Positions 8,181 through 63,750 of a DNA stretch of 64,000 nt are shown here, one piece after another. This DNA comes from Takakia lepidozioides (lineage: Eukaryota > Plantae > Bryophyta): positions 55,366,001 through 55,430,000 of the forward strand of contig CM060732.1 in the NCBI GenBank assembly GCA_030704615.1, in the 5' to 3' direction. Numbering within the stretch: the first letter of the stretch is position 1; every line of letters starts with the position of its first letter. Position numbers and translations under genes: made by a program. Under the pieces are notes generated by a model. The model searched no databases, was not told where the DNA came from, and saw nothing but the letters and a program-made list of their open reading frames with translations.

Positions 8181-8189
8181 CACGTCATT

Positions 8190-8410
8190 GTTCCAACAAA
8201 GCCCACTTTGCTATTTTTGCAATCTCCCCTGTCGAGGCTTCATATATTGATATATCCACTTTGCTATTTTTCACGAATTTCCAGCGACCAAAAGCACTTG
8301 AAATTCCAAATCTCCCACGTGAAGGGCCAATCACTGCTCTAGGAAAGCCCACTTTGCTATTTTTCCCGAATTTCCAACGACCCAAAGTACTTGAAATTCC
8401 ACATCTCCCA
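8190..8410. repeat. Short tandem repeat (CCACTTTGCTATTTT ... GAAATTCCA)
   Basis: Three CCACTTTGCTATTTT copies and two ACTTGAAATTCCA copies. Confidence 0.65.
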
Positions 8411-10170: not shown

Positions 10171-11419
10171 TTGGCGCCCCCCCCCCCACCCAAAAAAATG
10201 AAAAAAATGAACAATTTCTGATCAGCGGGTGGTTGCATAGTGCAGTCCTCTTGTGATCGAAAGTTCAACCTTGGCTACGGCGCACATTAGAAAAGGCCCG
10301 GGAGTTCAATGCGACCCCTTCGGTCCTGCCTGCGTGGCACCCCCCGCCACCACACCACATGAACTCTGTGGCACATGACACCTGTCACCACCACCCAACA
10401 TCGCGCGCGGGACACATCGCATGAGTCGGATGGACAGGATGCAACATGATCCATGTGCTGCAATCACCCATGATGATGGACGGCTTGACATGACAGGATG
10501 TGACACATACTCATATATGGTCGTAGGGAGATCGCGATGATCATGCTTTCATGCTTTTCGCGGTCCAGTTCGCACGCACATGGTGGACCTGCCGATTCGA
10601 ATGCGGCCCTTCAGCTGTCACTCCCCACGTCGATGCTTGATTGATTTAATTCATGGCAGCCACAGGACAGGTTTTCCAAGCTTCCTGGCGTTTGCATGGC
10701 CCGAAATGTATGATCCCGGCGGAAGCGGTGTTACAAGCACTTCCTTGAGGAGTATGCATTGCGGCTGTTATAAACTGTTGACTGAGTTGTGGCGGTGAAG
10801 CGATTACTCATTCGACTTGAGTATAAGGTTTCTTTTTGGAGAATTTGGAAGTCATTCGTGTGATTTGCAGCTATTTTCTTCCTCTTACTTGCCATTTCTG
10901 TCTGTTGCAGTCCATTTGCGTGCTTCATGTTTTAGTTTGAGTTCTTGCTTTCACATTCCAGCAAGCTTTGCTCTACTGGAGGATTCTTCAGGAGGAGGGT
11001 AGTGGATTTGGAGTGGGCGCCAATATGGTGAAACAATCCTCCATGCGCGAAGCGCGTCGGACATACAATGAAACGTACGACTCTGATGAGTGGGAAAATC
11101 TCATATGCGAGGCTCACTCAGAGGCAAGGGTTGAGTAGCCCGGTGATGATAATAGGAAGCCATTCAAGTGTATCCACTATCTTAAGCAATATAAAGATAA
11201 GAAGAAACTTAACATTCACAGGATAAATGGCTGTGATGCTGCTGTGGGAAAGGGTGGGCCTAAACTGAAAATGTACCCTGTTTTTGAAAAGGGGCAGAGG
11301 CACATCATGGAGGCTGTTCTTAGTAAGCACGGGATGAAGCCTCCTTCCTGTAAGTTGATGAAGACGAGGGTAGAACGCGAGGAGACGACGGCAGAAGAGA
11401 ACCTAAACGTAGGAAGCAC

Positions 11420-13900
11420 ATGAGTCTTTGGAAGGAGCCGGGAGTGGACCTTGATGATGATGATGACGATGACAATTTCCAGTTGTTGGACACACCACCT
11501 GCACTGCCACAACAGACTGTTAGACCTCAGTGCATTCGAAAGGACTCATTGGACGCACCTCTACCATCACAGGAAAGTCTTCCATCTGAGCGCATTGTAA
11601 AGTCTACGTTTGTACGACCTCCTACCGTGCCGCAGCAAAGTCTTCGACCCGAAGTGCACGTTGGAGTTGCATCTTCAAGTAGACAAGATGGCAGACCTCC
11701 AATGCACATTCTGAAGTCCACAACCCTTGCACCGCTAAGTAGAAAAGAGGCAAGGGAAGGCTTTGTCAAGGCGTCGTTGCTACTGACCTCGGATATTGTT
11801 GTGCCTCCCATACCCGCACCTGTTTCATGCCCAGGACTGACCTATCTGATGAAGTTTGACTTGTTGTCCGACGGATTTCCATCTCTGGACGAGCCTTCTT
11901 TTCTCAATCGCCTTGTGGCTCTTAGTGGGAACTTTGAGTTCAGGGACCAAATGATGGGCAACGCTTTTGGTCAATGGTGGCTTAAACGACAGGTAACACA
12001 CCTTCTTCTTGGCCTGCACCTTCATGGTCACAACTCCTTCTTTGATGATGCGTGTCTTTGCATTTTGTTTGAAGTTGCCTTTCAAGTTTAGGGTTTTTGG
12101 TTACTCTTCCTCTATTACTGACCAGCTCCATGACTCTGCAATGGCGGGGGAGCAGTTTGATGCACCTCTAGAGGAGAAGACAGCTGTGGAAAATGTGGTG
12201 GAGCTATTTGCCATACGTCTTGGAGTAACTTGTGACCATCCCGCTCAGTTGGCGGAATGCCAACTGGTGATGGCACATCACAAGTATGCCATGGCATTGC
12301 TGGATTTCGAAATGAAAGAATTGCAGCCCAATCTGAGTTGGAGGCTCGTAGAAGGCAGTTTGTTGACGACAACATGGCAAAATGGGATAGAGAACAATAT
12401 GATGAGAAACAGGAGGGAATCTGGGGTTGGTCCCCTCTGTACCAAATTGTTGCAGCAGGTGAGATCCCTCAGTTGCCCCCCGATATGTTCACACATTCTG
12501 AGGATGAATCTGATAGGTTGATGGTCATTCTTGAGGCTGCTCGCCACCACGCTCCACCTCCAAACATTCCGCTTTTCAGCAGGGTGTTCCGTCCGGTTTG
12601 GATGTCTCATGTTCACAACATGAAACCTATGTCAATTCCCCGAAACTCCATCTTGTTAACTCTCCGAAATCATCTTCTCAACACAGAAGATGGCCAGTGT
12701 GCCATTACAAATGCGGGTGAGAATTTCCTGCAGATTGGATACTTCCTGTACGGAGGCATGCCCCCATACGAGGAAGCCCGAACCCAGGTGCGTGATGGGC
12801 TTGCAGCCCTTTGGGGAGTGCGGAAAGAGGACTGCGAGCACCTTTTTGAAGATCTGCATTGTTTCATGCGCGAGGTCCAATGCAGGGCTATGCGTGACCT
12901 CGCCGTTCTGAATCCTATTGCCTTCAGAATATTGTGGTGTGGGAGTATACCAATTGATGGTGCAGGGGGCAAGAAAAAGCCTTGAAGGACTTCAACAAAA
13001 TTTTGAAGCATCGGGAGGATGTCGACATGGGTTGGCTTCCTTGTCCACCAGGTGTGTATTGCCCTTACCACGGTTCGTGCTACTGCATTTCAGTTCCTGG
13101 TGGTTCTTAACAATGTCCCTGGTGTTGTTCTCATTTCATTTCTTGTCACGGCCATATTTTCACAATGCCGATGTTGGTGTGCAGGCTGTCTTGACTACGG
13201 TGAAACCAGCCTACATGACAAGCTTGAGGCTGCCCAACAAATCGTCCATGAGGTCCACATTGAGAGGCTCGCAAGGGATGAGGCACGTTTCTGCAATGCC
13301 AAGTGTGGACATAAGGAGGCGGCTGTCCTTGAACCGCAGTCAAGCGCACTCGTCACCTGAGTACAAATACGAACATGGGGGCACTCATTTTGGCCGCTAA
13401 CGGCATGCAATTCCACACCTTCTGATGAGGCCAACAATGCCGTGGTAGAACATGTGTTGTCGGATCCTGTCCTCCCCCAGGCCCAAACGATCCCGCCTGT
13501 TGAAGAAACTTGTGGCGACATACAGTGCCCACAACCAGGTCCCATGACTCAACTTGAAATGGAACTAAGCACCACTCAGGTATTTCCTGGATTGGGTCGA
13601 CCGCCTCCCCTTGTGGCCTCTTTCACTTCGGAACAAACCCTCTATGACATAACTGAGTTCCAAAGTCCACCACCCCTTAATATGCGATGTCCCACTGATG
13701 AGGGTGCTATTGTACATGCAGTAAGCACTCTTGGATCTTTCCTTACCCCAGCTACCTCAGTGCTTAGACATGGGACAGAGCCTCCCACCCCCAATGCAAT
13801 GGTTCTCGCATTGCCTTCGCCCATGCGACCTTACCAAATCTTGTTGATGGTGCTGATACATTCACAGTATAGAGGCTACTACACGATTTCATGGTGATGT
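11420..13900 (+). pseudogene. Fragmented large ORF of unknown function upstream of the Ulp1 domain (probably TE-encoded)
   Basis: Consecutive + ORFs 11420..12091, 12257..12985 and 13442..13897 have protein-like composition and frameshifts. No family was recognised. Confidence 0.4.
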
Positions 13901-24344: not shown

Positions 24345-27210
24345 TCAAAGAGAATCTGGCGGAGCCCTACGTGAGGTGTCCTGCTGCAGAAGGGTGATGA
24401 CTTCTCCGTAGCCTAGTGTGGCTTGGTGAATGAATTCGCAGCACATAATTACAAGGTATACGTAATATTGATGCTTGCAGGGGACCCACTTCCCTCTCAT
24501 GCCGAGAGCGCCCTCACGCATCGTTACAAAATCCGGACAAGTGCACGTAGGGAAATTCCCCACGGTAACCTGATATTCTTTGCCATGAAGAACTGAGTCA
24601 ATAGACAGCACTGTGTAAATCCGTCCATACCCCGGGGCAGGGACTTTGGTGGTATGAGTCACCCGAGCCTGCAAAATTCTAGCCGATTCCATCTTGCAGT
24701 CGTGATCTGCACCCGAAGCGACACGGCGTACTGTTTTTCCTCGCCTTCCAAATGGGGGACCCTGGATTGCAAAGGGGAGCCTTCAGTGCACCTGTTCAGA
24801 GCTCTGGCCATCTTCGATGGGTCTCCGGACCTACTCGCAGCCCTTAGCATCAACAAAGTCGTATCAGGGCCCTTGCCTCCGCCCCGTCCCATCAGAAAAT
24901 TGCGGTACCTGGTTTGTTGTGTAAGTGCCCGCACCATGTCATCAGCAGTGGCCATATACAAGTCACATCCTGCTTTGGTAGACTGCTGCATCCAGGCGTT
25001 GTGAACAGTCTCCGCCAAATTACAGGATGGCATGTCGGCCAAGTCCTCCAAGGACATGTCTTGCAGGAGGCATTGCATGCAAATGTGAGGAACGAAAGTC
25101 AATGGAAGAGGTTCTGCAAGTGACAATCCAACAACCCCAAACGAACAGGCACGATGCAAAGTGAAATTTGTGTTTCTGGGATTGAAGAGGCTTACCGTCG
25201 TCATGAAAGCTCCCCACTGTCTGTACCTGAAGTGCCAGAAAACCAACCAGTCCTCCAACTCCTTTAGGTGGATACCAGTAGCAGCACCAGAGGAGAACCA
25301 CCAAGCCCGGATTGCTTGGTAAGTGCTCTCAACTTCTCCCATTGAGGTGGCATTTTTGTACTTTAGGCAGAGCCTTCTGTGCTCCAACTGAAGGTCAGGG
25401 CGAATGCAGCGCTTTGTATGACGTGCCAGGGATTGACTCCAATGGAAGAGGCATGTGCGCTCCCTATTTTCCATTGGGACCTTAGGATCCCCCGAACCAA
25501 ACACGCGTCGCACTGCATTGAAATTTGCCTGTGCACTATCAGCCATGAAGCCCGCAAAATTTGTGTTCTGCATTCCATTGCGCTGCATGACGGCCATGAG
25601 CGAATTCCACATGAGCATCTGGGATTCAGTGTCCTCCGACTGCATATCACAAATTGCTATGGAGAGCACACGCTGGTACGCTGGTCGTACACATGGCACG
25701 CCATGGTTGTCCAACCCTTCACCCGTTTGCAGTGATCAAACATTAACCAATATTTAGCCAAATCTCCTCCAGGTTGCATTCGGCGGACTATGCTCATACC
25801 ACTGCCTTTGCCCACTGTGGAAATCTTGAACAATTACACCTTGGACGAGCCTTGGTCAGGGAAGATACTGTTTGGAATGAATTTTTAGCGACTCCTCCGT
25901 TTGAGGTCCATAATGTTGTCCATGATCCAGCACTGCCTGTGCCCATTCTGAGTGCATTCACCTGGTTTCGAATATTGGGAGAGCTCAACACAGAGAAATG
26001 GTCCATCACTGCATCAAGCGAATGCATCCAGCATTGGTTGTGTCGCATCCCCTTCACCCAGTATGTGTTTTTCCAGGAATGCCTTGCTAGCTGCAAGCGC
26101 TCTAGCAAAAGGTGCAACACAAGGGGCATTGTGGAACTTTTGCTTCAGCAGATTTCTAGCGATGTCCACGCTATCCCTGCAACTTCCTTTTGACACAGGA
26201 TGCTTGTGTGTACCCATATGAATGCAGGCACGAGTCATTGTCTTGCATCGGTGTGCCACCTGGTACATACGAGTGTGGCACACAGAAACACAGGACGGGG
26301 AAAGTTTGTAGAACCTGCACACAAAAGTATTGGTCTTGGGAGGGGCAAGCCCTGGGGTGAAAGGATTCAAGGGCACACCTTCCCACTCACTTTCGTTTGG
26401 TTTAGCCCTGTTTCTCAGGCGAGGGCAAGAAATATTCACGCACTTGCAATGCCCAACGCAAACCGACCTTCGAAATTTCAATCCAATGTCGTTGTGGATG
26501 TTTGATGTTTTTGTCCTGCACCAAGGGTGTCCGTCATGTTTCTTGTCCATGCCCTGCAGAAGCCCAGCTAGTCCACTAGAAGACGTGGGAGGGTTAAGCT
26601 CAAACAAGATGTCCCCATCAAACTCTGCTGGCACATATTGAACCTGCTGCATCCAAAGGGACTCCCAATCAACAAAACGCAGCTCGCTCTTGCACCCATG
26701 CACCCTTGCGAGGGCTTTCAATTTCGGAATGACACTCGTTATCTCCTGCAATTTGTCATCATCCAAGAATGGAGTGTGCACTGGCAGATGAATCTCAGAA
26801 ACATCCTCAAAGGACGAGTCTGAAAGAGTCACAAATGTAGTGGATGTGCTCACCTCTTGTTTCACATGAACTGTGCCCTTCTGCTGCACGACCAATGCTG
26901 CAGTGCCAGGGGTAACTACTGATCCTGATTGTCTTCTCTCTTTTCCAGGGACCCGGTATGTGCCTGGAAGGACTCTCCACTTCCTTCCACACTCGCCAAC
27001 CAATGGTTTCTCCAAGTGCCCAGAATCCAAATTCCCATCCTCGTCATACACCTCTTTTTGAACAAGCAGAGAACCCAATTCTAGAGGGAACACTGTAACC
27101 AGCTCATCCTCATGAACAACTGCAAACCCCTCGTCATCTGTAGTGGCAGTCAGTGGAAGACTACCTGCATTGGAATGAAATCGAGCGAGTCTATCTCCCT
27201 CCCTGGACAT
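24345..27210 (-). pseudogene. Mutator-like (MULE) DDE transposase with N-terminal GCM/WRKY-like zinc domain and C-terminal SWIM finger; disrupted
   Basis: N-terminal PWCRTKTSNIHN...CVGHCKC..C...IHMGTHKHP. Core WLMFDH (D), FMADSAQAN (D), CLFHW (CxxH), CNLAETVH (E). SWIM CTCPDF...CKH. Frameshifts and stops around 25700-26020. Confidence 0.85.
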
Positions 27211-28504
27211 GTTTTCCTACACTGACCCAAAGTTGCGATCCACAAAGGGTCCCCCGAACTGATAGCCCGTAATTCTCGAAAGGGCATCCACCCCAAACGA
27301 ACTGAGGTGAATAAGGGTAGCACTGACCCAAAGACTGCGGGTGATGCATGCAATGGATGTAAGAATGACATGCACGACGAAAGTCTGCACCGAACTTCGC
27401 AGCCAGCCACACTGAGAGACACCAACCAGAAAAACTGTTTTCAAAGACAAGAAGCCACAAGAAGCCGTACTGTATTTGGATGAAAAACAAATCCTGAACA
27501 TGACATAAAACCATCCATTATGGAAAGACGGCAACGACCCTGGAGACCAGTAAACAGGAAACCCCAAATCTAATGAGGTTGTGTTGTGCCAGAAGAGCAA
27601 AGCACAAACACTGACACTCCGGGGGATACCTCGCACGAATGTGTGTAACACATCACCATTGCCGACACAAACCTTTATACCAAATGACCCCATTGCGACA
27701 GTGACGGTGAAATGCAAATCGCAGGGTAGGCAGTACAACATATGTGGATGCATATGTGAAGCATAATTATTGCGAATCTACAAGTACTGCTCGAAATTGA
27801 ACTAGCAATAGATTTTTACGGCATTTTCAAATTTGAAAGAATGCAAGAAGGCTGCCATGTATTGGCAGCCGGTGAAGTACATCTGACATATATCACAAGT
27901 ACATGCAACGGCAAAGGAAGTGCCACCACTTTTTTTCTTGGATAATACAAAGACGTAGAAATGGATGAATTCCGTTCGCACACAATGATAACACCCGCAT
28001 CCAAATATGGTTAACAATGTCCAATTTTTATTTTGGATACATGCCAAAACAACCCTTGTTGCAAACGTCAAACTGGAGAGCTCTAGAGGCAGCGTGGGGA
28101 GCCCTTGTTTCCACCGGAGGAGGAAGAGAAGGAAGTCGTTATACTTTACGAGCACTAGGGACAGGAATAGAGCCAGACATGGAATGAGGATGGAAAGAGT
28201 AGACGAAGAGGAAAATGAGGAAGAAGAGGCAAAGAGGAAAGTTTGGCGATGGAAGAGTAGGATTTTGGATAAGAACAGCAGCCCGCCATACTTCCGAGAA
28301 CAGTTGAGGAGGAGACTGCATCCGAGGAGAGACGGACGCCGAAGATGATGTTGATGCTGGCCTAAGGAAGTAGCAGATAGTGGAAAAGAGGATGGGGGAG
28401 ATGCTCCAGAACATGCTCGGCGTAGAGAGCAGTCCGAAGCGCAAAGGGTCCCCGGCGATTAGGGAGTCTTCTGGAGCAGTAAAAAAAAAGGTACAAGTGA
28501 TGTC

Positions 28505-31500
28505 CACACCTATTTGGAAGCTCAAACAGAGTGCCACAACGCACACTCTTTGAGACCCACCTTTGTGCACATTTTTGATGTGAAAATCGGCCAATTTGGG
28601 CCTCTATGCCTGGTTCAATCCACCACTGATTGGAATCTCAAACAGTGTGCGGCAATGCACACAGTTTCAGACCCCATTTGATTTTGATACAAAAATCTGT
28701 CTAGTTCAATCCACCACTATTTGGGAGCTCAAACAGTGTGCGGCAACGCACACTGCTTGAGCCCCAACTTTGGGCTTGTTTTTTGATACAAAAATCGGCC
28801 CCAAACGGGCCTGTATGTCTAGTTCAATCCACCACTATTTGGAAGCTCAAACAGTGTGCGGCAACGCAAACTGCTTGAGCCCCCAACTTTGTGTTTGTTT
28901 TTTTATTCGAAAATCGGCCAAAAACGGGCCTGTCTGTCTGGTTCAATCCACCACTATTTGCAAGCTCAAACAGTGTGCGGCAACGCACACTGTTTGAGCC
29001 CCCCTTTTCATTGTTTTTTTCATGTGAAAATCGTGCACACAGGGGCCTCTCTGTAAGGTTCATTCCACCCCTATTTGGAAGCTCAAACAGTGTGCGGCAA
29101 CGCACACTCTTTGAGCCCCCACTTGACATTATTTTTCCATGTTAAAATCGGCCACAAAGGCATCTCTGTCAGGTTCAATCCACACTAACCTGGCAGCTCA
29201 AACAGTGTGCGTCAATACACACTGTTTGAGCCCCCCTTTTGCCTTGTTTTTTGGTGTGAAAATCGTGCACACATGGCCTCTCTGTCTGGTTCAATCCACC
29301 CCTATTTTGAAGCTCAAACAGTGTGCGTCAACGCACACTATTTGAGCCCCCTTTCTCATTGTTTGTTTCATGTTAAAATCGGCCACATAGGGCATCTCTG
29401 TGAGGTTTAATCCACACTTACCTGGCAGCTCAGACAGTGTGCATCAACGCACACTGTTTAAGCCCCCCTTTTGCCTTGTTTTTTGGTGTGGAAATCATGC
29501 ACACAGGGCCTCTCTGTCTGATTCAATCCACCCCTATTTTGAAGCTCAAACAGTGTGCGGCAACGCACACTATTTGAGCTCCCCTTGTCATTGTTTGTTT
29601 CATGTGAAAATCGTGCACGCAGGGGCCTCTCTGTAAGGTTCATTCCACCCCTATTTGGAAGCTCAAACAGTGTGCGTTGCCGCACACTATTTGAGCCCCC
29701 TTTTGTGCTTGTTTTTTGATGTGCAAAACGGCCACATAGGGCCACTCTGGCAGGTAGAATCCACCCCTTATTGGCAACTCAAACAGTGTGCGGCAACGCA
29801 CACTGTTTGAGCCCCCCTTTGTGATTGTTTTTTGTTGTGAAAATCAGCCACATAGGGCCACTCTGGCAGGTTGATTCCACACCGCATTGGAAGCTCAAAC
29901 AGTATGCGGCACCGCACACTGTTTGAGCCCCCTTTTTGCTTGTTTTTTGATGTGAAAATCGGGCACCTAGGGCCACTCTGGCAGGTTGAATCCATCCCGA
30001 ATTGGATGCTCAAACAGTGTGCGGCAACGGACACTGTTTGTGCCCCCTTCACTGCCTGCTTTTTGATTTGAAAATCGACCACTCAGGGCCACTATGCCAT
30101 GTTCAAATCACCCCTTATTGGAAGCTCACACTGTTTGAGCTTCCAATGCGGGGTGGATTCAACCTGCCAGAGTGGCTCTATGTGGCTGATTTCACACCAA
30201 ACAACAATCACAAAGGGGGGGCTCAAACAGTGTGCGTTGCCGCACACTGTTTGAGCTTCCAATAAGAGGTATTTACAACCTGCCAGAGTGGGCCCAAGGT
30301 GGCCGATTTTCACAATAAAAAACAAGCAAAAAGGGGGGTTCAAACAGTGTGCGTTGTCGCACAGTGTTTGAGCTTTCAATTTGAGGTGGATTCAACTTGC
30401 CAGAGTGGCCCTATGTGCCCGATTTTCACATCAAAAAACAAGCAAAAAAGGGGGCTCAAACAGTGTGCGTTGCCGCACACTGTTTGAGCTTCCAATAAGG
30501 GGTGATTTGAACATGGCATAGTGGCCCTGAGTGGTGTGCGGCAACGCACACTGTTTGAGCCCCCTTTTTGCTTGTTTTTTGATGTGAAAATCGGGCACAT
30601 AGGGCCACTCTGGCAAGTTGAATCCACCCCACATTGAAAGCTCAAACAGTGTGTGACAACGCACACTGTTTGAGCCCTTTTTTTGCTTGTTTTTTATTGT
30701 GAAAATCGGCCACCTTGGGCCCACTCTGGCAGGTTGTAAATACCCCTTATTGGAAGCTCAAACAGTGTGCGGCAACGCACACTGTTTGAGCCCCCTCCTT
30801 TGTGATTGTTGTTTGGTGTGAAAATCGGCCACATAGGGCCACTCTGACAGGTTGAATCCACCCCGCATTGGAAGCTCAAACAGTGTGCGTCACCGCACAC
30901 TGTTTGAGCCCCCATTTTGCTTGTTTTTTGATGTGAAAATCGTGCACCTAGGGCCACTCTAGCAGCTTGAATCCACCCCAAATTGGATGCTCAAACAGTG
31001 TGCGGCAACGCACACTGTTTGTGCCCCCTTCACTGCGTGCTTTTTGATTTGAAAATCAACCACTCAGGGCTACCATGCCATGTTCAAATCACCCCTTATT
31101 GGAAGCTCAAACAGTGTGCGGCAACGCACACTGTTTTGGGGCCCCTCTCTGCTTGTTTTTTTATTTGAAATCGGGCCAAACTGGGCAAGTATGCATGCTC
31201 AAAACACCCGTAGTTGGAAGCACGAATAGTGTGCGGCAACGCACACTGTTTGTGCCCCCTTTTTGGCCCCCTCTCTGCTTGTTTTTTTATGTGGAAATGT
31301 GCCACATAGGGCCAAATGTCATGTTCAAAACACCCCTATTTGGAAGCTCAAGCAGTGTGCGGCAACGCACACTGTCTGTGCCCCACTCTCTGCCCGTTTT
31401 TTTGATTTGAAAATCGGCCGTTCAGGGCCAGTGTGCCATGTTCAAATCACCCATTATTGGAAGCTCAAACAATGTGCGGCAACGCACACTGTTTTTGGCC

Positions 31501-31560
31501 CCCACACTGCTTGTTTTCTGATGTGAAATTGGGCCACACATGGGCTGTCTGCCATGCTCA
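28505..31560. repeat. Tandem array of ~27 units (~116 bp), each with hairpin CTCAAACAGTGTGCG-GCAA-CGCACACTGTTTGAG
   Basis: Hairpin starts counted at 28521, 28637, 28728, 28846, 28965, 29082, 29197, 29313, 29429, 29545, 29662, 29778, 29894, 30009 ... 31464. An inverted block lies at ~30127-30533. Confidence 0.95.
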
Positions 31561-31631
31561 AAACACCATCGTTTCTTGCCTCTCTCTTATATCAATTTGA
31601 ATGAACAACCCTACAGGAGAAGATGTAAAGG

Positions 31632-31811
31632 GTGGCGGATGAGAACCCTTCGGGGCAGGGGAAGGAGATCATTGTTGATGTGGACGATGAGTTCTATGAA
31701 AGCAAAGCTGCTGAGATGCTGGGGGGTCAGAAGATAATCTCTCAGCTTGTGGTGCAAAGTATGCTTGCCTCGGGTGGGAGGTTGAAGATTCCCCTGTGTA
31801 GGTTGGTTTTT
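31632..31811 (+). pseudogene. Truncated ORF start (…EIIVDVDDEFYESKAAEM…KIPLCRL), interrupted by the Crypton-like element
   Basis: Protein-like N-terminus begins right after the array and changes abruptly to AT-rich sequence at the 31806 direct repeat. Confidence 0.4.
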
Positions 31812-34558
31812 GAGATAAAATTTCTTTCACGACACGAATTTTCTTTCAAAAACTTTCTTTCCAAATTTCCATCAATGTAGACAAAAAGGAACGCTAAGCA
31901 GAGAAACTAAAATCAATAGAAGGTATTTTTGGCTGTATTTGTGAACGCCTCGTACTGGCAACATTGTCTACAGTTTCTAACTGACTCAGGCACATGTGAT
32001 AATCAGTTCCCCTTCAATTTCTTAAGAATGTCAGCTGTGGTTTTGCTATCAAGCACTTGCAGCGTGATGTTGCCGTGAACAACTTCAAAACTAGGTCCAA
32101 TGTGTGTCACATTTCCTGTTGAGATAACCTGGTTACAACCTCCAAATATTCTCTCCAATTTATCGCTATTCTGGTTCAAGGCTTCGATGATAGCATCTTG
32201 ACCTTCTTGACTCTCCCAGAATGAGTCGTCGTCGACTTGGGTAACATTACTCTTACAAGGAGCCGTAGTAAGAGCTGATGATGAAGTAGAGTAGGATTTC
32301 TGGTTAATTTTGTCACTGACAGAGAGAACACCGCTCGAATGAATCGCTGGAACTTGAGAGTGCATAATATTTGAATTAACTGCTCCAGTAGATCCACTTC
32401 CCTGAGAACCGCCATACTCAGATTCAATTACCCTTTTGTAATTATCTTTCTCTTCTTCAAGAGCTTGTTCATATGAAAGAGGCTTTCCATTGCACACTTC
32501 ACCAGATATAATTCGTTGCAGGGCACAATCTCTCACCATTTTGTTCATTTGATTGTATCTGCATACAAAAGAATAATAGCAATATATGAGTGTAAGATAT
32601 TACCAATTGAAATAACCACAAAAGCAGGAAACATAGAGATCTAGATAGAATGTAACATACTTGCCATATGCCTTAGCACTCCTGTGACCTGTAAGCTCCA
32701 TTCCATGTTCTCGTGGAACATAAGCCTCCTCCATCCGTGTTATTCCAACACCGCGACCAGTCTTGTTGGTAAGAACTTTGCCCGCTAATTCTGGCACATC
32801 TTGTTCATGTAGGAGCGCAACGAATTTCTACCTACATGAATCTTCGAGAACCAGACATCATCAGTAAACTTCCATTTCTGCCTTGGTGTAAGGAACATAG
32901 GGTGCGGCCCTAATTCCTGAGGAGTCCACGTAGGTCGTTTCTTGATCAGCAGTTTGTAGAGATCAATTACATGTGCATCCTAACAATCAATAGGTTTTCT
33001 ATGATCTTCTGCACTGCAATGATTGATATCCAGTTGATAATTCTTGGAGATGCCCTAGTAAAACCTACAAAGAAAGTACAAAATGTCAAGCCAATATAAG
33101 TGTGAAGGTACTTTGACTAAAAAGCATGTTAACATAATGGAATTCATGCACTGATCGTATGTTGTGGCAAAACATGCAAAGAAAATACAAGATGTCAAGC
33201 CAACGTAAATCTGAAGGTATTTCCAAAAAGCATGAATTAACATAATGCAATTCATGCACTCACCGCAGAACAACTCCCAACCGCGTCTCGACTAGAGTGA
33301 AATCCTCTTCGTCCACTTTGCGAAGCTCTTACGAAGAAATTTCGAGTACACATGTAGCTAAACCGCATATTGAGACCAGATGGTGAGTCAGGCTGACAAA
33401 TTTTTTGGCTCAACATAAGGATTTCTTCCTGCTTAGTTAGCACATCGTTTTTTTTAACAACGCGTCCCAAACCTGCATTGCATGAGCGACGAACAGCCTT
33501 GTCCGCGGCCAGTTTCACTTTGGCATATCTCGGATAATTCATAATGTTGAAGGTACAAGCTGACGCTTCTCCAGACTCTACTATCCGCATCTCGCATCGT
33601 GCTTTTATAAGACGTCCCAAAGCTCTGAACATCGACTGTATACTCCCTGGAGGGTACAAAGAGCCATCGCTCTTAGTCACCTCTAATATGAATAATGTTA
33701 GCATGTCTACTAACAATTTCACATCAGTTTCTGACAGGTCCGCCACTGATTTTTCTGTCGAGTAACCTTTATGCTCCCTCCAGCAGTCGAATGCTCGACG
33801 GGCCCATAACTCACCGTGCTTACTGCGACGCTGACCTCCTCCCAACACATTCTGCAGCTCACTCTCGTCAACCTCTCGAAAGCGCCTAACCAAATTAACA
33901 TCACTTCTAGGCTGCGTTGAAGTACGTGCTTGCGGATCCTTGTCATCACCGTTATTAGGCACATCATAATCATCATCAGGTACCTCCTCAAAATCTTCGA
34001 CAAGAGGAATACACGTAACGACCTCAGAATTAGTGCTGGCTTCTACAAATTCTAGAAAACCAGCAACCTCAACGTCATCACAGACATTAAAAGAACTCTC
34101 CAAACCTGATTCATATGGAGAGCTACGAGTAAGAGTAACTCTAGCTTTAGATATGATATCGTCAAAAGCTTGAGAGATACCAAGATCAAACGGATGTTCA
34201 GCATGAATTCCCAAACAAATTTTTTTCAGCGATGAATCTTGAAAATATTCGACACTCATTGTTTACCAAAACGGCATGAAATAATTGCAACATGTCAATC
34301 AACCATTCTACGCCTGACGACGCCACGTCGAAGATAAGGCACACATGATAATAGAATCCAAATTAAAAGCAATGCAAGGACGAGATCAGTATCTGCACGG
34401 GGACCTGATGTCTTCAACGCGACAGATGCACTGCAAAGAACAAATGTAGGTTTAAAATAAGAAAGGGTGGAAAACGTGTCAACCCTAGAAAGAAATGGCC
34501 ATCGAAAAGATGGCGGACCGGAAAGAAATGAGCGGGAAAGAAAAATTTCCCAGTTTTT
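31806..34558 (-). mobile_element. Crypton-like tyrosine-recombinase DNA transposon
   Basis: GTTTTT direct repeat at 31806-31811 and 34553-34558. TTTCTTTC x3 (31821, 31840, 31854) mirrors GAAAGAAA x3 (34488, 34521, 34536), with a 9-nt gap to the repeat on both sides. It contains a single YR gene. Confidence 0.75.
32003..34259 (-). pseudogene. Tyrosine recombinase, DUF3504/Crypton (ZMYM/KCTD1/QRICH1-related) type; exons 34259-33264, 33064-32661, 32558-32003
   Basis: WARRAFDCW, FILEVTKSDGSLYPPGSI, FFVR (catalytic R), SKNYQ, LYKLLIKKRP, VWFSKIHVGRNSL, TNKTGR, TGHRS..YGK|Y. Frameshifts at ~33328 and ~32797 and two TAG stops in exon 2. Confidence 0.88.
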
Positions 34559-34716
34559 CACGTTTGGGAAGGGTCGTTCCCTCGTTGCTGGTGCTCTCAA
34601 ATTCAGGAAGGACCTTGGGAACGACCCTTCCCTAATACTTATCCCACGTGTGGCCCAACATGCATGCACGGTCCGGTTCCGTTGCTTTTACAGCCGTTAC
34701 CAGTCCTAGGCGGTTA

Positions 34717-35160: not shown

Positions 35161-35928
35161 TTAACCGCCCAACTCTGGTCACGCGGGGACCGGCACCTCC
35201 CCCGCACGTGTGAAATTAAGAGACAATAAAACCCGCTACCATTGCAAGAACTTCATAGAACTGCTACAGAGAAAACACGTGAACTGTGGGGTTCTGATTC
35301 ACCAACATCGTCATTGATCCCCAACATATATTCTCGACGTACTGAACAGATCTAAACCTCAGAATCGGAACATAAAGCTTGTCTGTAGGCGAGCATGTGT
35401 TGTATCCAAGGGACAAAGTGGTAAGTAGCCAAGTTGATGAGCCCTGGCCCATGTTGTAAACCAATGTCAGGTTCTTTCCCGGTACAAATGAGGAGGGCAA
35501 TTGTTCTTTTTTGGGGGCGTGTTTTTTGGCAAATGAGGGCAAATAGATCCACACATGTTTTTTGGTCCAGCTTATATCACTTGCTGGTGGTGGTATTAAG
35601 CTAACTTGTCTACAACAGATAAGGTGTGGTCAAATTGGGGTGGAGATGGCAAGGTACCACCAGACCTTCCGCAATTAGGAACCGTCAGAGTGCACAGGGT
35701 TTTAGGATTCCAGTCTCCTGAAAGCATAACTAATTATATGGCAAGCACTCCTAAGATCAAAGCTCCTCCCACAGGTCCATAAAAAATCTCCCATGGCTTT
35801 CAAAAAACAGAGCCCAAATTGTCCACTAGGTACTACTTGTTACACTGTTGAACCTATAAAGGGCAGTTGGCAGCCAACAACCCATGAATGTGTATACTAG
35901 CTAGCGAATAAAATTTGGCAAGACACCC

Positions 35929-38006
35929 TCAGTCACGGCACATCACTGAAGTTGAAGATGACTGAGACTGCAAAATTTGGAGCGTTTCTACAAAAGAATC
36001 CAGGGTCTTCTTGGAAGAGCCACCGGGCCCTACAGCATTTCGTACTGTTACACTCAAATCCTTCACATTTTTCCTTAACATCTCTCCTCGCTCCTCTTCC
36101 ATCAGAAGCCTCACGGCCCTCTCTACCTCCTCCTTGCCAACCAACCCATCATCGGATCCCTGGACCCCAAAAGCAACTTTTAGTACGTCTACAAGGAGTG
36201 TTTTGTTCATGTGTTGCTCTGCTTGAATCGGCCAAGCTATCATGGCCACGGCCATGCACACACTCTCCACTGTGGAGTTCCACCCACAGTGGCTCAGGAA
36301 ACCTCCAACCGCGGGATGGGCAAGGATCTGCAACTGTGGCGCCCATGCAGAGAACACTAATCCCTGCTTCTTAGTCCTCTCCATGAAACCTTGGGGGAGG
36401 AAGGTAGAGATGTCACCTTCCATACCTTGTGGAGCTCTTAGGACCCAAAGAAAGTTTTGCCCACTTGTCTCAAGCCCGAGAGCTAGTTCATGAATCTGTT
36501 TGGCAGAGAGAGTAGCTATGCTTCCAAAGGAGACATACAGAACAGATGAGGGCTGCTGTGTGTTCAACCAGTCTATGCACTCATTACTGTCTGAACTCGC
36601 TTGTGATGGGTTGTTGAACATGTTCTCCTTGTTTCCATCTAGGAGCGTGGGTCCCACCATTAAGATGCTAGGCACCTGCAAGGAACCGTATGTCAATTGC
36701 ATATAAGTAAGATGGTATGGCTGTAAAGGTGCCACTACCACTGAAACTGAATTGAAGTACTCGGCCAGCAGCCATGAAACTACGCAACAAGATATACCCT
36801 GAGACTAATTCATCTCTGGGCCCTGTAATATCCCTGTGTGTTAAATGTAAAGATACTGACCTGAGTTGTCTTCGACCCACTTCGAAGTACATCTCGAAGG
36901 CCTTCGATTACGGAAGATTCCATTTCGTAAACACTATTCACAAGCACCCCCTCAGCTTCCCATAAACTCTCTGCGTTATCCACCAAAAAGCCAAAGTCCG
37001 CCTTTGTCAGCAAGCTTCGAGGCAGATCCTGAGGTTTGACGGGAGGAAACGCCGGAAGGACAAATGGAGCCTGTTGAGCTGACGTCGGAATCCGACCTTG
37101 TGCAACAAAATAACGTAAGTGGTAAAGCAGGGAAAGAAAATGTGCTGGTGATGAAAACAGACAATATCTCGGAATCCGATACTTGGTAGCTGTAACCTGC
37201 CATTCAAGTTGTGTCACTCGTGAGGTGTATATCGGGACTGAATAGATAACTTCCGTTTGCAGTGTTACTCAAGATAAGGTAGTAGATTCCATACAATGTC
37301 ATCTGTAACGCATTATATCTTAATCAAGCAAGCTTATTAACAAGCTGAGAGAATGTGCATGGGCAGGCATACCACTTACTAGAGCAATGCACTATCCTCC
37401 CAAATGTGGTAGACCTAAAGATTCCACAATGTTCAAATATCTTGTGTATCTTTCTCGGCCTAGCTTATTAGATCAATGGCGAATTCATAGTACCGAGTGG
37501 CATGTACGCTTGTTGTAGAATCACATGTGCTCGACACTGGAAACTGCAAATACAACCCTGAATGAAAGCTCTCTTGTAATGCAATCATAGGCACCTACCT
37601 GAGTCCAACCCAAGAACATGTCGGAGATGATGCATACAGGAGGACCTACGAGGGTAGCCCGGGGGGGGTCCATCAGTGATCTTATGAGTTCTTCAAATGA
37701 TGCTTTCATGGCATGCGATGCCGATGCCTCTTTCAAGCCCGAAATGCTCGAGCTGTTTAGCATTGCAAATCCCACAGGAAACTCAAGGGCTACCAATTGC
37801 ACATTGTGGCTGAACGCAAAGCCGGTGTCATCAATCAGGGCCCGTTTCGCACTAGAGAGATGTGGAGTCGTGGTCACAAAGGTGACAGTGATGCCATAGC
37901 CAGCCAAGATCTTCGAGAACTGCACGAAGGGGCCAATGTGGCCTGCCGCCGGAAAGGGGAAGGCAACCACATGGACTCCAAGGAGCTTAGCTGCCTGCGT
38001 CGCCAT
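35929..38006 (-). CDS. Family-1 UDP-glycosyltransferase; exons 38006-37599, 37196-36861, 36675-35929 (~496 aa)
   Basis: HVVAFPFPAAGH (catalytic His), CIISDMFLGW, SVLYVSFGS, and PSPG box WAPQLQILAHPAVGGFLSHCGWNSTVES...WPIQAEQ. Both introns are phase-0 GT/AG and the frame is open throughout. Confidence 0.95.
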
Positions 38007-49324: not shown

Positions 49325-50073
49325 TTCCACTTCATCGGTCTGAACTAGATTTGTTGTATCCTCCCAAACAATTCCCTACTTATCTATGTTGCAAAGCACA
49401 CTGTAGCTCCAATGCGGAATCAAACAGCGGGTGCGTCCTCGCAGTAGATCGGACATCAGTCATTTGATTTGTTAGTACCTAGTGGACAATTTGGGCTTTG
49501 TTTTTTGAAAGCCATGGGAGATTTTTTACGGACCTGTGGGAGGAGCTTTGATCTTAGGAGTGCTTGCCATATAATTAGTTATGCTTTCAGGAGACTGGAA
49601 TCCTAAAACCGTGTTCACTCTAATAGTTCCTAAATTGCGGAAGGTCTGGTGGTACCTTGCCATCTCCACCCCGATTTGACCACACCTTATCTGTTGTAGA
49701 GAAGTTAGCTCATCTTCTTTCAGCGTGGGTAAATCATTGCTATACTCTTAATACCACCACCAGCAAGTGATATAAGCTGGACCAAAAAACATGTGTGGAT
49801 CTATTTGCCCTCATTTGCCAAAAAACACGCCCCCAAAAAAGAACAATTGCCCTCCTCATTTGTACCCCGGAAAGCCTGACATTGGTTTACAACATGGGCT
49901 GCTCATCAACTTGGCTTCTTACCACTTTGTCCCTTCGATACAAGACATGCTCGCCTTCAGACAAGCTTTATGTTCCGATCTGAGGTTTCGATTTGTTCAG
50001 CATGTCTAAAATATCTGTTGGGCTTAATCATCAACGACGGTGATCACAACATGTGATCAGAACCCCAGAGTTC
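49325..50073 (-). repeat. Inverted partial duplicate of the UGT locus flanks (39488-39638 joined to 35275-35835)
   Basis: 49325-49476 is the reverse complement of ~39488-39638. 49473-50073 is the reverse complement of ~35275-35835. Confidence 0.92.
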
Positions 50074-51632
50074 ACTAGTTCAGCTTATTAGAGAGGGGTT
50101 ATTCATCTACTTCTATTAACTTAATATGTCATGGTTTGTGTTTTTTTGGGGGCCCTGCGTGTGCAGAGCCCCCTATGTAATAGTAACTAGTAACTAGTGA
50201 TAAAGATAAAGATAAAGATTCTTTAACGTCCAGTGAATTTACAGAGCCTGCTGCTGAAAACACAGGCCATCGAGGGTCCAATGGACGGTCTGAAGGCACA
50301 TGTTGAAGGATTGAACACAAGATCACCTAGGTTATGCACAGGCAAGGCACAAACACCCAACCACTGGGCTACCTGCTCAAGTAGTAAGTGAGAGGGGAAG
50401 AGAGGCCCGGCTCTCTTTATATACGCTCACACGGCGGTGGGACCTTCTTAGAAGCCGGCCGAGGCTTAGCGGTGGGACCCTTCTAGAAGGTTACCTCCGC
50501 CATGTATACTTCTCCAAACCACCTCTAAAAATCTACTTCCTAGAAACCCCAAAACGGGTGTCGTGGGGTTAAGCAACTAGGTGACCCGAAACAGAGGTGG
50601 CCCGGGTCGCCTAGTTTTTCATCCAACCGTAACTTTGATGGATGAAGGTGGATGAAGACGGTGTCTGAACGAAAAATGTAGCGCTGGAAGTCCTCTACAA
50701 GTTCGACTTTACAGCGCAAAAAATAATTAAAGGCCTGCCGTGAGGAATTGTTGAACCCGAATCTGCCTATACTTTGTGAGCAGGTACTTGAAGCGGTTCA
50801 TCCCAGTGGATGGATGAACACGGGTACAGGCAGGGCATATCCTGTTTTGGGACAAAAGTGCCAAAACAAGCCTCGTCCGTGAAGCGTCCCGTTCCAGTTA
50901 CATTGGAAATGCAGTCAAAGTACACCTTCCCAAAACAAAATACTCCTTCCAAACATGGCCTGCAAAGGAAGTGTCGTGTGCACATAGAGAGGCAAGTACT
51001 CAGTCGTGTTCTCCAAATATTCTACTACAAGTTGGTCACCCCTTAACATGCAGGGATGCCAGCGTAAAAATAAGTGAATATTATTATTTATTTATTTTTT
51101 AATGATTAAACTAAATTAGATCTACAAACAAAAGTCAGTGTCCAACGTGACGATCTTTGATTGCCCAAATCCAGGAACCTTGTTCGTGCCATCTTTTTTT
51201 GACAAGTTGATGACAATCAGAGAATAAAACAATATTGTTATCAATGAGCCAATATATGTATATACATATATATGGTGCTTTCTAGTTGGGTTCTTTAATA
51301 TTTGCTGGGGAAAGAAAATAATCAGCTGAAGTACTTTCTAGATTTGATACTGGTTTGTCTTCTTCCTCACTCACTCCATGCTATATAAGAGTACTAAATA
51401 GACTACCTCTTACTCTCCCAATCTCTGTCTATATATTGCGGTCCTTCTTCGTCTTCTTCCTGACTTTCTACATACTCTATACATGAACACTAGATCTTAA
51501 TCCATGAGGTCTCTCTCTCTTATCATACAAGTCCACTTACATGTATAGGAGAGAATATGAATTGCCGTCCAAGCTGAAGCCAAAAAAGTAGTAGACTGTC
51601 AATGTTAAGGCTACTAAAGATGAAAATACCGG

Positions 51633-62840: not shown

Positions 62841-63750
62841 GTGCTCAAGGGCCACCACTTGGTGGAAGATCCACCACAAAAAACAACAGGTCCAGAAGGA
62901 CCAGCACCAGCAAGGGTGCCAGCACCTGTCAGTGGGCAGAAGGTAAGGCCAAGGATGGCGTTACAACCAACACGGGCAAAACCACCCTTTCCAATATATT
63001 CAGGAAAAGGGGATCCCGATGTACACATTAGCCAATTTGAGCACATGTGTATAGTGAACAATGAGAATGGCGATGATGCCAAGATGAGACTGTTTCCTTG
63101 TTCACTTATCAAGAAAGCAAGTGAATGGTACGCAAGATTCCCTGATAATCATTTCCTAACCTGGAATGGCTTGAATACAGCATTTCGAAATATGTTCAGG
63201 ACAAGTAAAACTGAGGATGAAGTGTATGGAAGTTTACAACAGCTGAAGCAGAAGAAGCATGAAACTGTTGAAGAGTATATGGAGAAGATGGAATTGATGA
63301 TGAAAAAGCTGGCTGCAGTACCAGCACCCGGTTTACAGAAGACTTGGTTTGTGAGTGGACTAAGACCAGAGTTGCAAAAGAAAGTGGATATGTTACCCCA
63401 CAACACAGTGGAGGAGGCATTTGAAACTGCGAACAGAATTGAGCAATTGGGAATGCTCAGGAGAGAAAAAAAAGAAGATGAGGACTCTGAGGATGAGTCA
63501 GAGAAGAAGAAGAGCAAGAACTAAAAAGAAAGAGTAAGAGAAAGGAGAAGTTGAAGAGGGATAACTATGAAAAAAAATTGGAAGAAATCTTGAAGAAGTA
63601 TGCCACAGAGGCTGCATTGGAGGAAGGGTGTATGGTGTGCAAAGTGCCAGAATGAAGGCCATACCACCACAGAATGTCACATGAAGGGAGAAACACTGTA
63701 CTATCTGTAAAATGGATAACCATTCTACTGAGAATTGTTACTACAACAGA
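62841..63750 (+). pseudogene. Gypsy gag (capsid plus two zinc knuckles), disrupted
   Basis: YSGKGDPDVHISQFE, LFPCSLIKKASEWY, TWNGLNTAF, LKQKKHETVEEY, WFVSGL. Then CAKCQNEGHTTTEC and ICKMDNHSTENC after stops and frameshifts. Confidence 0.88.

Follow-up and report, generated by a model that had tools for sequence, protein, structure and literature searches.

A probable dead Crypton-type transposon in Takakia lepidozioides, with relatives in other non-seed land plants

The stretch of DNA analysed here, which we call the window, comprises 64,000 nucleotides of Takakia lepidozioides (GenBank assembly GCA_030704615.1, contig CM060732.1, positions 55,366,001 to 55,430,000 of the forward strand), and around its middle it holds a decayed tyrosine recombinase (YR) gene enclosed by short repeats and a hairpin. 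An initial annotation had described this locus as a full-length Crypton-like transposon with an intron-containing YR gene, running from 31806 to 34558 between two copies of a 6-bp direct repeat, GTTTTT. We recovered the intron-containing gene in a three-exon model, built from tblastn with relatives together with direct reading, which runs on the minus strand from 34259 to 32003. The features of the gene and of the two ends are as follows, in gene order and with positions of the window.

34626-34640, minus strand: 5'-terminal motif AAGTATTAGGGAAGG, at the outer base of the hairpin
34563-34635, no strand assigned: 5' hairpin module with 19-nt arms, 95% complementary, and a 35-nt loop; the strongest inverted repeat of the region
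34560-34563, no strand assigned: internal ACGT, between the inner repeat and the hairpin
34553-34558, plus strand: right GTTTTT, internal and not terminal in our reading
34488-34552, plus strand: 5' inner inverted-repeat arm with three GAAAGAAA (34488, 34521, 34536)
33264-34259, minus strand: exon 1, coding for a variable N-terminus, the Cre-like N-terminal DNA-binding domain and the region of the first Arg; the frame is broken near 33321-33331 and again at the 3' end of the exon
33055-33263, minus strand: intron 1 (or insertion), 209 nt, GTGAGT..TAG
32661-33054, minus strand: exon 2, with the catalytic Lys region (GISKNY) and the KTGR and GHRS motifs; broken by TAG at 32980-32982 and by a frame break at 32788-32827
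32559-32660, minus strand: intron 2, 102 nt, GTATGT..CAG
32006-32558, minus strand: exon 3, the C-terminal region, with its stop at 32003-32005
31811-31861, plus strand: 3' inverted-repeat arm with three TTTCTTTC (31821, 31840, 31854), aligned to the 5' inner arm at 16 of 21 positions
31806-31811, plus strand: left GTTTTT
31800-31803, no strand assigned: candidate 3'-terminal core AGGT, one change from ACGT and in register with the inner-core ACGT when the left end is laid on the inner repeat; weak
31623-31632, plus strand: alternative, less likely 3' end (ATGTAAAGGG), resembling the reverse complement of the 3' end (GCGTAAAGAC) of L001, the relative family nearest to the window copy

Removal of intron 2 restores both the frame and the alignment exactly: the splice of exons 2 and 3 yields ..AYGKYNQMNK.., which can be aligned to the relative of family L001 residue for residue, and the relatives, L001 included, have no intron at this place. 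Intron 1 holds an internal 109-nt tandem duplication (33060-33152 and 33169-33260) and is missing from L001, so it may be an intron specific to this family or else an insertion. From ATG to stop the coding region is complete, which sustains this part of the earlier full-length description, and it is damaged by three frame breaks, two in exon 1 and the third between 32788 and 32827, and by two TAG codons, one in frame in exon 2 where a relative has Tyr and the other at 32785-32787, downstream of the third frame break. This copy can no longer make a recombinase. It had been called dead on a count of two frameshifts and two stops, a damage of the same order as ours, which differs by one frame break.

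The protein searches were made with single exons or stop-free pieces of the gene. The piece at 32788-32979 matches PF12012 (DUF3504) with an E value of 2.2e-6 and 28.3 bits, which is 1.4 bits short of the curated gathering cut-off of 29.7 bits; the DUF3504 type assigned to the gene beforehand is thus seen in the E value and falls below the cut-off in score. Among 10 further proteins, nine of them of the plant lineage, a DUF3504 match at E<=0.01 was found in P0152 (28.2 bits) and in the non-plant-like P0018 (162.9 bits) only. The latter, a protein of 1476 aa from an ENA metagenome, combines three tandem DUF3504 and QRICH1 modules in one chain, and its catalytic motifs are degenerate. When a profile of 12 plant relatives was compared by hhalign with a DUF3504 protein that has three strong DUF3504/QRICH1 modules, the two aligned over 281 columns with a probability of 98.5% and an E value of 1.5e-15, and the closest named clusters of the protein atlas were animal DUF3504/Phage_integrase families. 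When the PDB was searched with a sequence profile, no match was significant (QRICH1 at E 1.8). The AlphaFold model of the intact relative P0090, whose core has a per-residue confidence (pLDDT) of 80-95, matches both domains of Cre (E 1e-8, ~345 columns, template-modelling score 0.62 by target) and further matches the Tn1549 integrase, XerA and QRICH1. As modelled, this relative has the Cre-like two-domain fold, with an N-terminal helical DNA-binding domain followed by a catalytic domain.

The motifs ..IRG..EL.., ..SKNYK.., ..TNKSGR.. and ..TGHK..Y..YD are conserved in the alignment of 12 relatives. The residues R, K, KxxR, H and Y, mapped by the order of the motifs and not by structural superposition, are aligned in these proteins and can be read in the window pieces (..FFVR.., ..SKNY.., ..KTGR.., ..GHRS.., ..YGKY..). 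The usual HxxR is KxxR in all 12 aligned relatives and in the window copy (KTGR), the first His being replaced by Lys.

A full HMMER search with exon 1 returned 324 proteins at E<=1e-3, the best of them at 49% identity. We looked up the sources of 31 of the 324, 29 of which are among the best 150 matches, and found that the named relatives all come from Riccia sorocarpa, Marchantia, Calypogeia, Physcomitrium, Ceratodon, Diphasiastrum or Adiantum, the remainder being metagenome or SRA contigs, so that the named hosts are mosses, liverworts, lycophytes and ferns. In a quick tree made from exon 1 alone, the window copy falls in a clade with the Riccia and L001 families (SH-aLRT branch support 98), and the sister of this clade holds a Diphasiastrum protein together with a second relative family, E2. 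At the locus of the fern relative P0036, in Adiantum capillus-veneris, a Replitron_HUH gene lies 4.7 kb downstream of the Crypton-type gene.

These sources bear on the possibility that the locus is contaminating DNA of non-plant origin, such as that of a mycorrhizal fungus with Glomhopper elements, an idea that draws on the abundance of DUF3504 Cryptons in Glomeromycota, which live inside such plants (PMC13465315). No fungal protein was met among the 31 relatives whose sources were looked up, and the named relatives all belong to chromosome-scale plant assemblies. Furthermore, a plant-type gene adjoins the element: the open reading frame (ORF) at 35929-36741 on the minus strand, 1.3 kb away, has a UDP-glycosyltransferase domain (PF00201, E 2.9e-20) and its nearest atlas clusters are all Streptophyta, so the plant context holds. 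We consider contamination so improbable that it hardly enters the discussion, and the claim that a Crypton-type element with a YR as its only gene resides in a land-plant genome is borne out by the relatives and by this neighbour.

The content of the interval bears in turn on a different origin, in which the locus would be a fragment of a YR retrotransposon of the DIRS/Ngaro kind that has lost its reverse transcriptase. In DIRS-type elements, too, a recombinase occurs together with inverted repeats and with an internal region of complementarity. A domain search with the four recombinase pieces and with two short ORFs that overlap the element ends gave DUF3504/QRICH1 matches only, and the tested ORFs showed no domain of a reverse transcriptase, an RNase H or a methyltransferase; of the ten largest ORFs of the window, seven have no Pfam match and the other three are a UDPGT, a retrotransposon gag and a PQQ. 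Moreover, the gene has spliceosomal-type introns, the complete relatives, at 2.9-3.65 kb, contain the recombinase gene alone, and the closest known proteins are of CryptonA/DUF3504 types, all of which makes a DIRS/Ngaro origin exceedingly improbable in our view. Cryptons have the recombinase as their sole enzyme, with neither a reverse transcriptase nor a DDE transposase, and in the window interval we accordingly see no other domain match.

Three relative families allowed us to compare ends, two of which, the JGI family (L002-L010) and the E2 family (L013-L015), have ends set by multi-copy homology, while the third, L001, fits the same plan. This shared plan consists of a short core (ACG(T) or AGTG), a 5' hairpin of ~110 bp, an inner inverted repeat, the gene, an outer inverted repeat and the core again; the core is ACG(T) in the JGI family, (A)CG in E2 and AGTG in L001. 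Relatives with this plan occupy different genomic sites, and their homology ends exactly at the short cores. In the JGI family, all contigs have the same intact ORF of 843 aa, set in three or more different flanks on the left and three or more on the right, and the homology extends 688 nt upstream of the ATG and 2957 nt downstream of it, giving an element of 3.65 kb that starts, after A(C/T)G, with TATTGGGTAACGG.. (TATTGGG..) and finishes with ..CCGATTACG(T) (..GATTACG(T)). This family has an additional upstream ORF of 132 aa, whose status is unassigned. The E2 family has three copies of 2.93 kb, 94-95% identical and from one ENA assembly, with a 5' end that reads (C/T)GTACTAGAGAAGC.. ((C/T)GTACTAG..) and a 3' end that reads ..GGCTTTTAACG, given too as ..TTTTAACG. 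The full relatives with defined ends, of 2.93 and 3.65 kb, thus hold the recombinase gene alone, and for both families the Crypton feature of several copies at different sites is observed. In both, the first ~110-120 nt form a long palindrome that is followed directly by an inverted copy of the 3'-terminal 22-28 nt, and joining the two ends would turn 3' arm, hairpin and inner arm into a single long palindrome.

Family L001 is represented by one genomic copy and by spliced and unspliced transcript contigs. Its hairpin, with 46-nt arms, lies at 8181-8289, its inner repeat agrees with 11652-11676 at 22 of 25 positions, and AGTG adjoins both ends; a 3' end at ~11398 had been considered and was dropped once the inverted repeat at 11652-11676 was seen. 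Four TTTCTTT stand directly after the inner repeat, the same place as the 5' 8-mer cluster of the window copy. Subterminal short repeats are present in each family, their sequence differing between families. In the 3' region of L001, at 11178-11320, there are also four ..AATTGGTGAC.. at a spacing of ~45-50 nt, a family-specific counterpart of the 8-mer clusters of the window. Two contigs of the ENA assembly ERZ25073694 have another repeat in common, 70-83% identical (L001 385-1626 and 5238-5709 against L015 2691-3407); at least two Crypton families are present in this assembly, which has the look of a plant genome within a metagenome record.

In the window, the hairpin at 34563-34635 has a folding z score of -6.6, with none of 200 shuffles equally stable, and it starts 5 nt beyond the right boundary proposed earlier at 34558, the same kind of module being present in the three relative families. 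A 15-nt pattern built from the E2 and JGI 5' ends only has its sole window match at one mismatch or fewer on the gene strand at 34626-34640 (0.12 expected). The inner base of the hairpin reads ..CCCAA-ACGT-.., the counterpart of ..CCAA-ACGT-AATCGG.. in the JGI family, and an nhmmer search with the relatives' 5' modules as profile returned two weak, collinear matches, at 34640-34620 and 34576-34533 (E 1.6 and 4.9). Taken together, the hairpin, the pattern match, the ACGT at the inner base and the collinear matches lead us to place a putative 5' end at ~34637-34641, ~80 nt beyond the earlier boundary, and with the end there, the right GTTTTT and the adjoining ACGT would lie inside the element.

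The short motifs near both ends agree with what had been reported, with three TTTCTTTC on the left mirroring three GAAAGAAA on the right and a GTTTTT at each side exactly 9 nt outside the outermost 8-mer. The two strands of the window together contain 13 copies of the 8-mer, compared with 3.9 +/- 1.9 in dinucleotide shuffles, none of 100 shuffles reaching 13, and 6 of the 13 fall in the two oppositely oriented clusters; the clusters therefore exceed chance. Their most likely role is that of accessory sites bound by the recombinase or by its DNA-binding domain, and the 5' cluster may also serve as promoter or 5' untranslated region.

The direct repeat admits another reading, namely that the earlier model is exact: the element would span 31806-34558, GTTTTT would be a 6-bp crossover core duplicated at both ends, and the hairpin would be unrelated flank or a separate small foldback element. 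The hexamer abuts the inverted arms at both ends in direct orientation, as in attL and attR of a tyrosine recombinase, an unusual position for which we roughly estimate a chance of 1e-3 to 3e-3, and at the alternative termini no clean direct repeat was found. GTTTTT is not significant in itself, since it occurs 62 times on the plus strand of the window, and the 9-nt stretches between it and the 8-mers are mirror images at 3 of 9 positions only. Moreover, a hairpin is inside the element in three relative families, in two of which the ends are set by multi-copy homology, and the relatives' terminal motif is found at 34626-34640, 80 nt beyond 34558. Because the direct repeat would be an unlikely coincidence, this model keeps a small share of our belief, and we regard it as unlikely rather than negligible. 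The right boundary at 34558 is thus not upheld, and with it falls the proposed circle junction GAAAGAAA-N9-GTTTTT-N9-TTTCTTTC, given also that the cores of the relatives are of ACG(T)/AGTG type.

At the other side, the 3' end probably lies at ~31800-31811, so that the earlier left boundary of 31806 is probably right within ~6 nt, though not proven; for the alternative end at 31623, an inverted repeat with the 5' inner arm was not found. The 3' end is not pinned down because the searches yielded no same-family copy for comparison: word-index protein searches with exon 1, the C-terminal exon and the conserved middle gave one match of 43% and then none, and in the JGI metagenomes neither a protein-pattern scan nor a two-arm DNA-pattern scan for the hairpin found any. 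Beyond the 8-mers, an alignment of the two window ends with each other was not significant, and the 16 of 21 positions shared by the 3' arm and the 5' inner arm reach a z score of only ~2 against shuffles, which is marginal. A search for an empty site in the window met the 116-bp satellite at the left flank and, at the right flank, sequence that is not satellite save one 16-nt match.

Some of these results weigh against placing the ends as we do, and against reading the locus as a Crypton-type element. Neither a homology breakpoint nor an empty site sets either end of the window copy, alignments of its 5' and 3' regions, local and gapped, to the relatives' ends are not significant alone, and the nhmmer matches at the 5' end are weak. 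Between the proposed termini there is no clean direct repeat, with AGGT on the left and ACTT on the right (plus strand), each one change from ACGT, and the 6-7 nt beside the two arms are the direct GTTTTT repeat and not a mirror, something that the GTTTTT-core model explains and ours does not. In addition, the DUF3504 score of the window piece lies below the curated cut-off and most plant relatives have no match at E<=0.01. Finally, since the first His is Lys throughout the lineage, recombinase activity is something that we infer, from identical intact copies of the JGI family at several sites, and do not show.

A last alternative is that the locus is a pseudogene of a domesticated, recombinase-derived host gene and not a transposon copy, given that some plant relatives look domesticated. 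In Marchantia polymorpha, the relative P0046 (MARPO_0141s0031) is without the ..GH..Y.. catalytic end, and its counterpart P0172 in M. paleacea is near-identical and belongs to the same 90%-identity cluster; the pair may be a domesticated Crypton gene in liverworts. In Physcomitrium patens, LOC112281767 (P0155/P0007) has several annotated isoforms and fuses a Coilin N-terminal domain to the recombinase N-terminal domain and the first catalytic part, which makes it a candidate domesticated fusion. The window copy, on the other hand, is flanked by the hairpin, inverted-repeat and motif-cluster architecture of the mobile relatives, and it sits between a satellite array and other repeats, so that we hold a domesticated origin to be very unlikely.

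We conclude that the window copy is probably a dead, structurally complete DNA transposon of the Crypton type, ~2.84 kb long, on the minus strand between ~31800-31811 and 34637-34641, and that its sole gene encodes a two-domain, Cre-like YR of a branch that is related to DUF3504 and restricted to non-seed land plants. Along the gene strand, its order would be short core, hairpin module (34635-34563), ACGT, inner inverted-repeat arm with three TTTCTTTC, three-exon recombinase gene, outer inverted-repeat arm with three GAAAGAAA, and short core. Of the earlier full-length description, the right end at 34558 is the part that we replace. By gene content and probable cycle the element is a Crypton, and it departs from described Cryptons in host range, active-site make-up and end structure. 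We call it a variant rather than a plain Crypton because its 3' end recurs inverted just inside the 5' hairpin. Cryptons are expected to be free of terminal inverted repeats, and here E2 shows them at 22 of 22 positions (read from the printed junctions), L001 at 22 of 25, and the window copy in its mirrored 8-mer clusters; as for terminal direct repeats of 4-6 bp, the proposed window ends have only degenerate ACGT-like tetramers, and the GTTTTT repeat is probably not at the true 5' end.

We propose that the recombinase would pair the two ends and exchange strands at the short identical cores, that the circle so released would carry 3' arm, hairpin and inner arm joined as a single long palindrome, and that this circle would reinsert at a target holding the same short core. 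A bolder version, which we advance only tentatively and think doubtful as a whole, is that non-seed land plants have their own old Crypton-like branch with a different way of working: the joined ends (3' arm, hairpin module and inner arm) would be a long, cruciform-prone palindrome resembling a Holliday junction, the crossover would take place asymmetrically in one arm, the recombinase would use a Lys in place of the first active-site His as topoisomerase IB does, and the family-specific 8-mer clusters would be arm-type binding sites.

Other repeats and genes surround the element. On the left, a satellite array at 28500-31567 has ~25 units with a period of ~116 bp, 72-88% alike, of which the block 30127-30533 is inverted, and the array ends at 31567, 240 nt from the transposon. 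An inverted repeat pair of ~600 bp, 85.6% identical, lies at 35279-35835 and 49473-50075. Further away there are a Ty3/gypsy gag ORF (Retrotrans_gag, Ty3_capsid) at 62841-63524 on the plus strand and, at 24659-27753 on the minus strand, three large adjacent ORFs of 351, 398 and 178 aa with no Pfam match at E<=0.001.

Reports of Cryptons come from fungi, oomycetes, a diatom, animals and Chlamydomonas, and give these elements short direct repeats and no inverted ones (PMC3212892), no terminal repeats having been found in the animal ones (Kojima and Jurka 2011, PMC3212892), and in Glomeromycota DUF3504 Cryptons are known as Glomhoppers, whose ends are undefined (PMC13465315). A review of land-plant transposons from 2022 includes no tyrosine-recombinase elements in its list and has DIRS so far only in green algae (PMC9033089), and our literature search for Crypton or DUF3504 with plant terms returned no description of such elements in land plants. 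It is against these known hosts and ends that the lineage of the window copy is a Crypton by gene content and probable cycle and a variant otherwise. A recombinase-only branch across liverworts, mosses, lycophytes and ferns, at least one family of which looks recently active, would extend the repertoire of plant transposable elements by a superfamily and would provide plants with a Cre-like enzyme of their own whose site can be defined. The plan of hairpin and offset repeat could serve as an annotation signature for Crypton ends, which are notoriously hard to define, and the window copy, a dead specimen, is both a worked example and a caution that short direct repeats are insufficient to place ends.

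With CryptonA/DUF3504 elements (PMC3212892) and Glomhoppers (PMC13465315) the plant branch shares a sole gene for a two-domain Cre-like recombinase with profile-level DUF3504/QRICH1 homology, the nearest atlas clusters, a small element, an intron-containing gene and, in the relatives, short terminal direct repeats. It differs in its land-plant hosts, in the Lys that takes the place of the first His of HxxR in 12 of 12 aligned relatives and in Pfam scores below the curated cut-off. Furthermore, the plant proteins are extended at the C-terminus by a conserved region, while those of animal Cryptons are described as being without a C-terminal domain, and the plant elements have a 5' hairpin module and an offset terminal inverted repeat, whereas no terminal repeats were found in the animal elements and Glomhopper ends are undefined. 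For CryptonF, excision as a circle, reintegration at a short sequence identical to the core and direct repeats of 4-6 bp have likewise been proposed (Goodwin et al. 2003, as cited in PMC3212892); unlike the plant branch, its proteins carry a GCR1_C domain and belong to a different recombinase branch, and neither inverted repeats nor a hairpin are known from its elements.

The modelled relative P0090 has its closest structural counterparts in the Cre/loxP system and among the Tn1549/Tn916 integrases, which are bacterial or phage systems and have 13-16% sequence identity to the plant relative. The Tn1549 integrase works on a circular intermediate whose junction is made of the joined ends. Sites of the Cre and Tn1549 type have 13-bp arms around a spacer of 6-8 bp, in contrast with the palindrome of ~150 bp that the joined ends of the plant branch would make. 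Elements of the DIRS1 type, in turn, are alike in uniting a recombinase with terminal repeats in inverted orientation and with an internal stretch that is complementary to the ends, but they encode a reverse transcriptase and RNase H and move through RNA.

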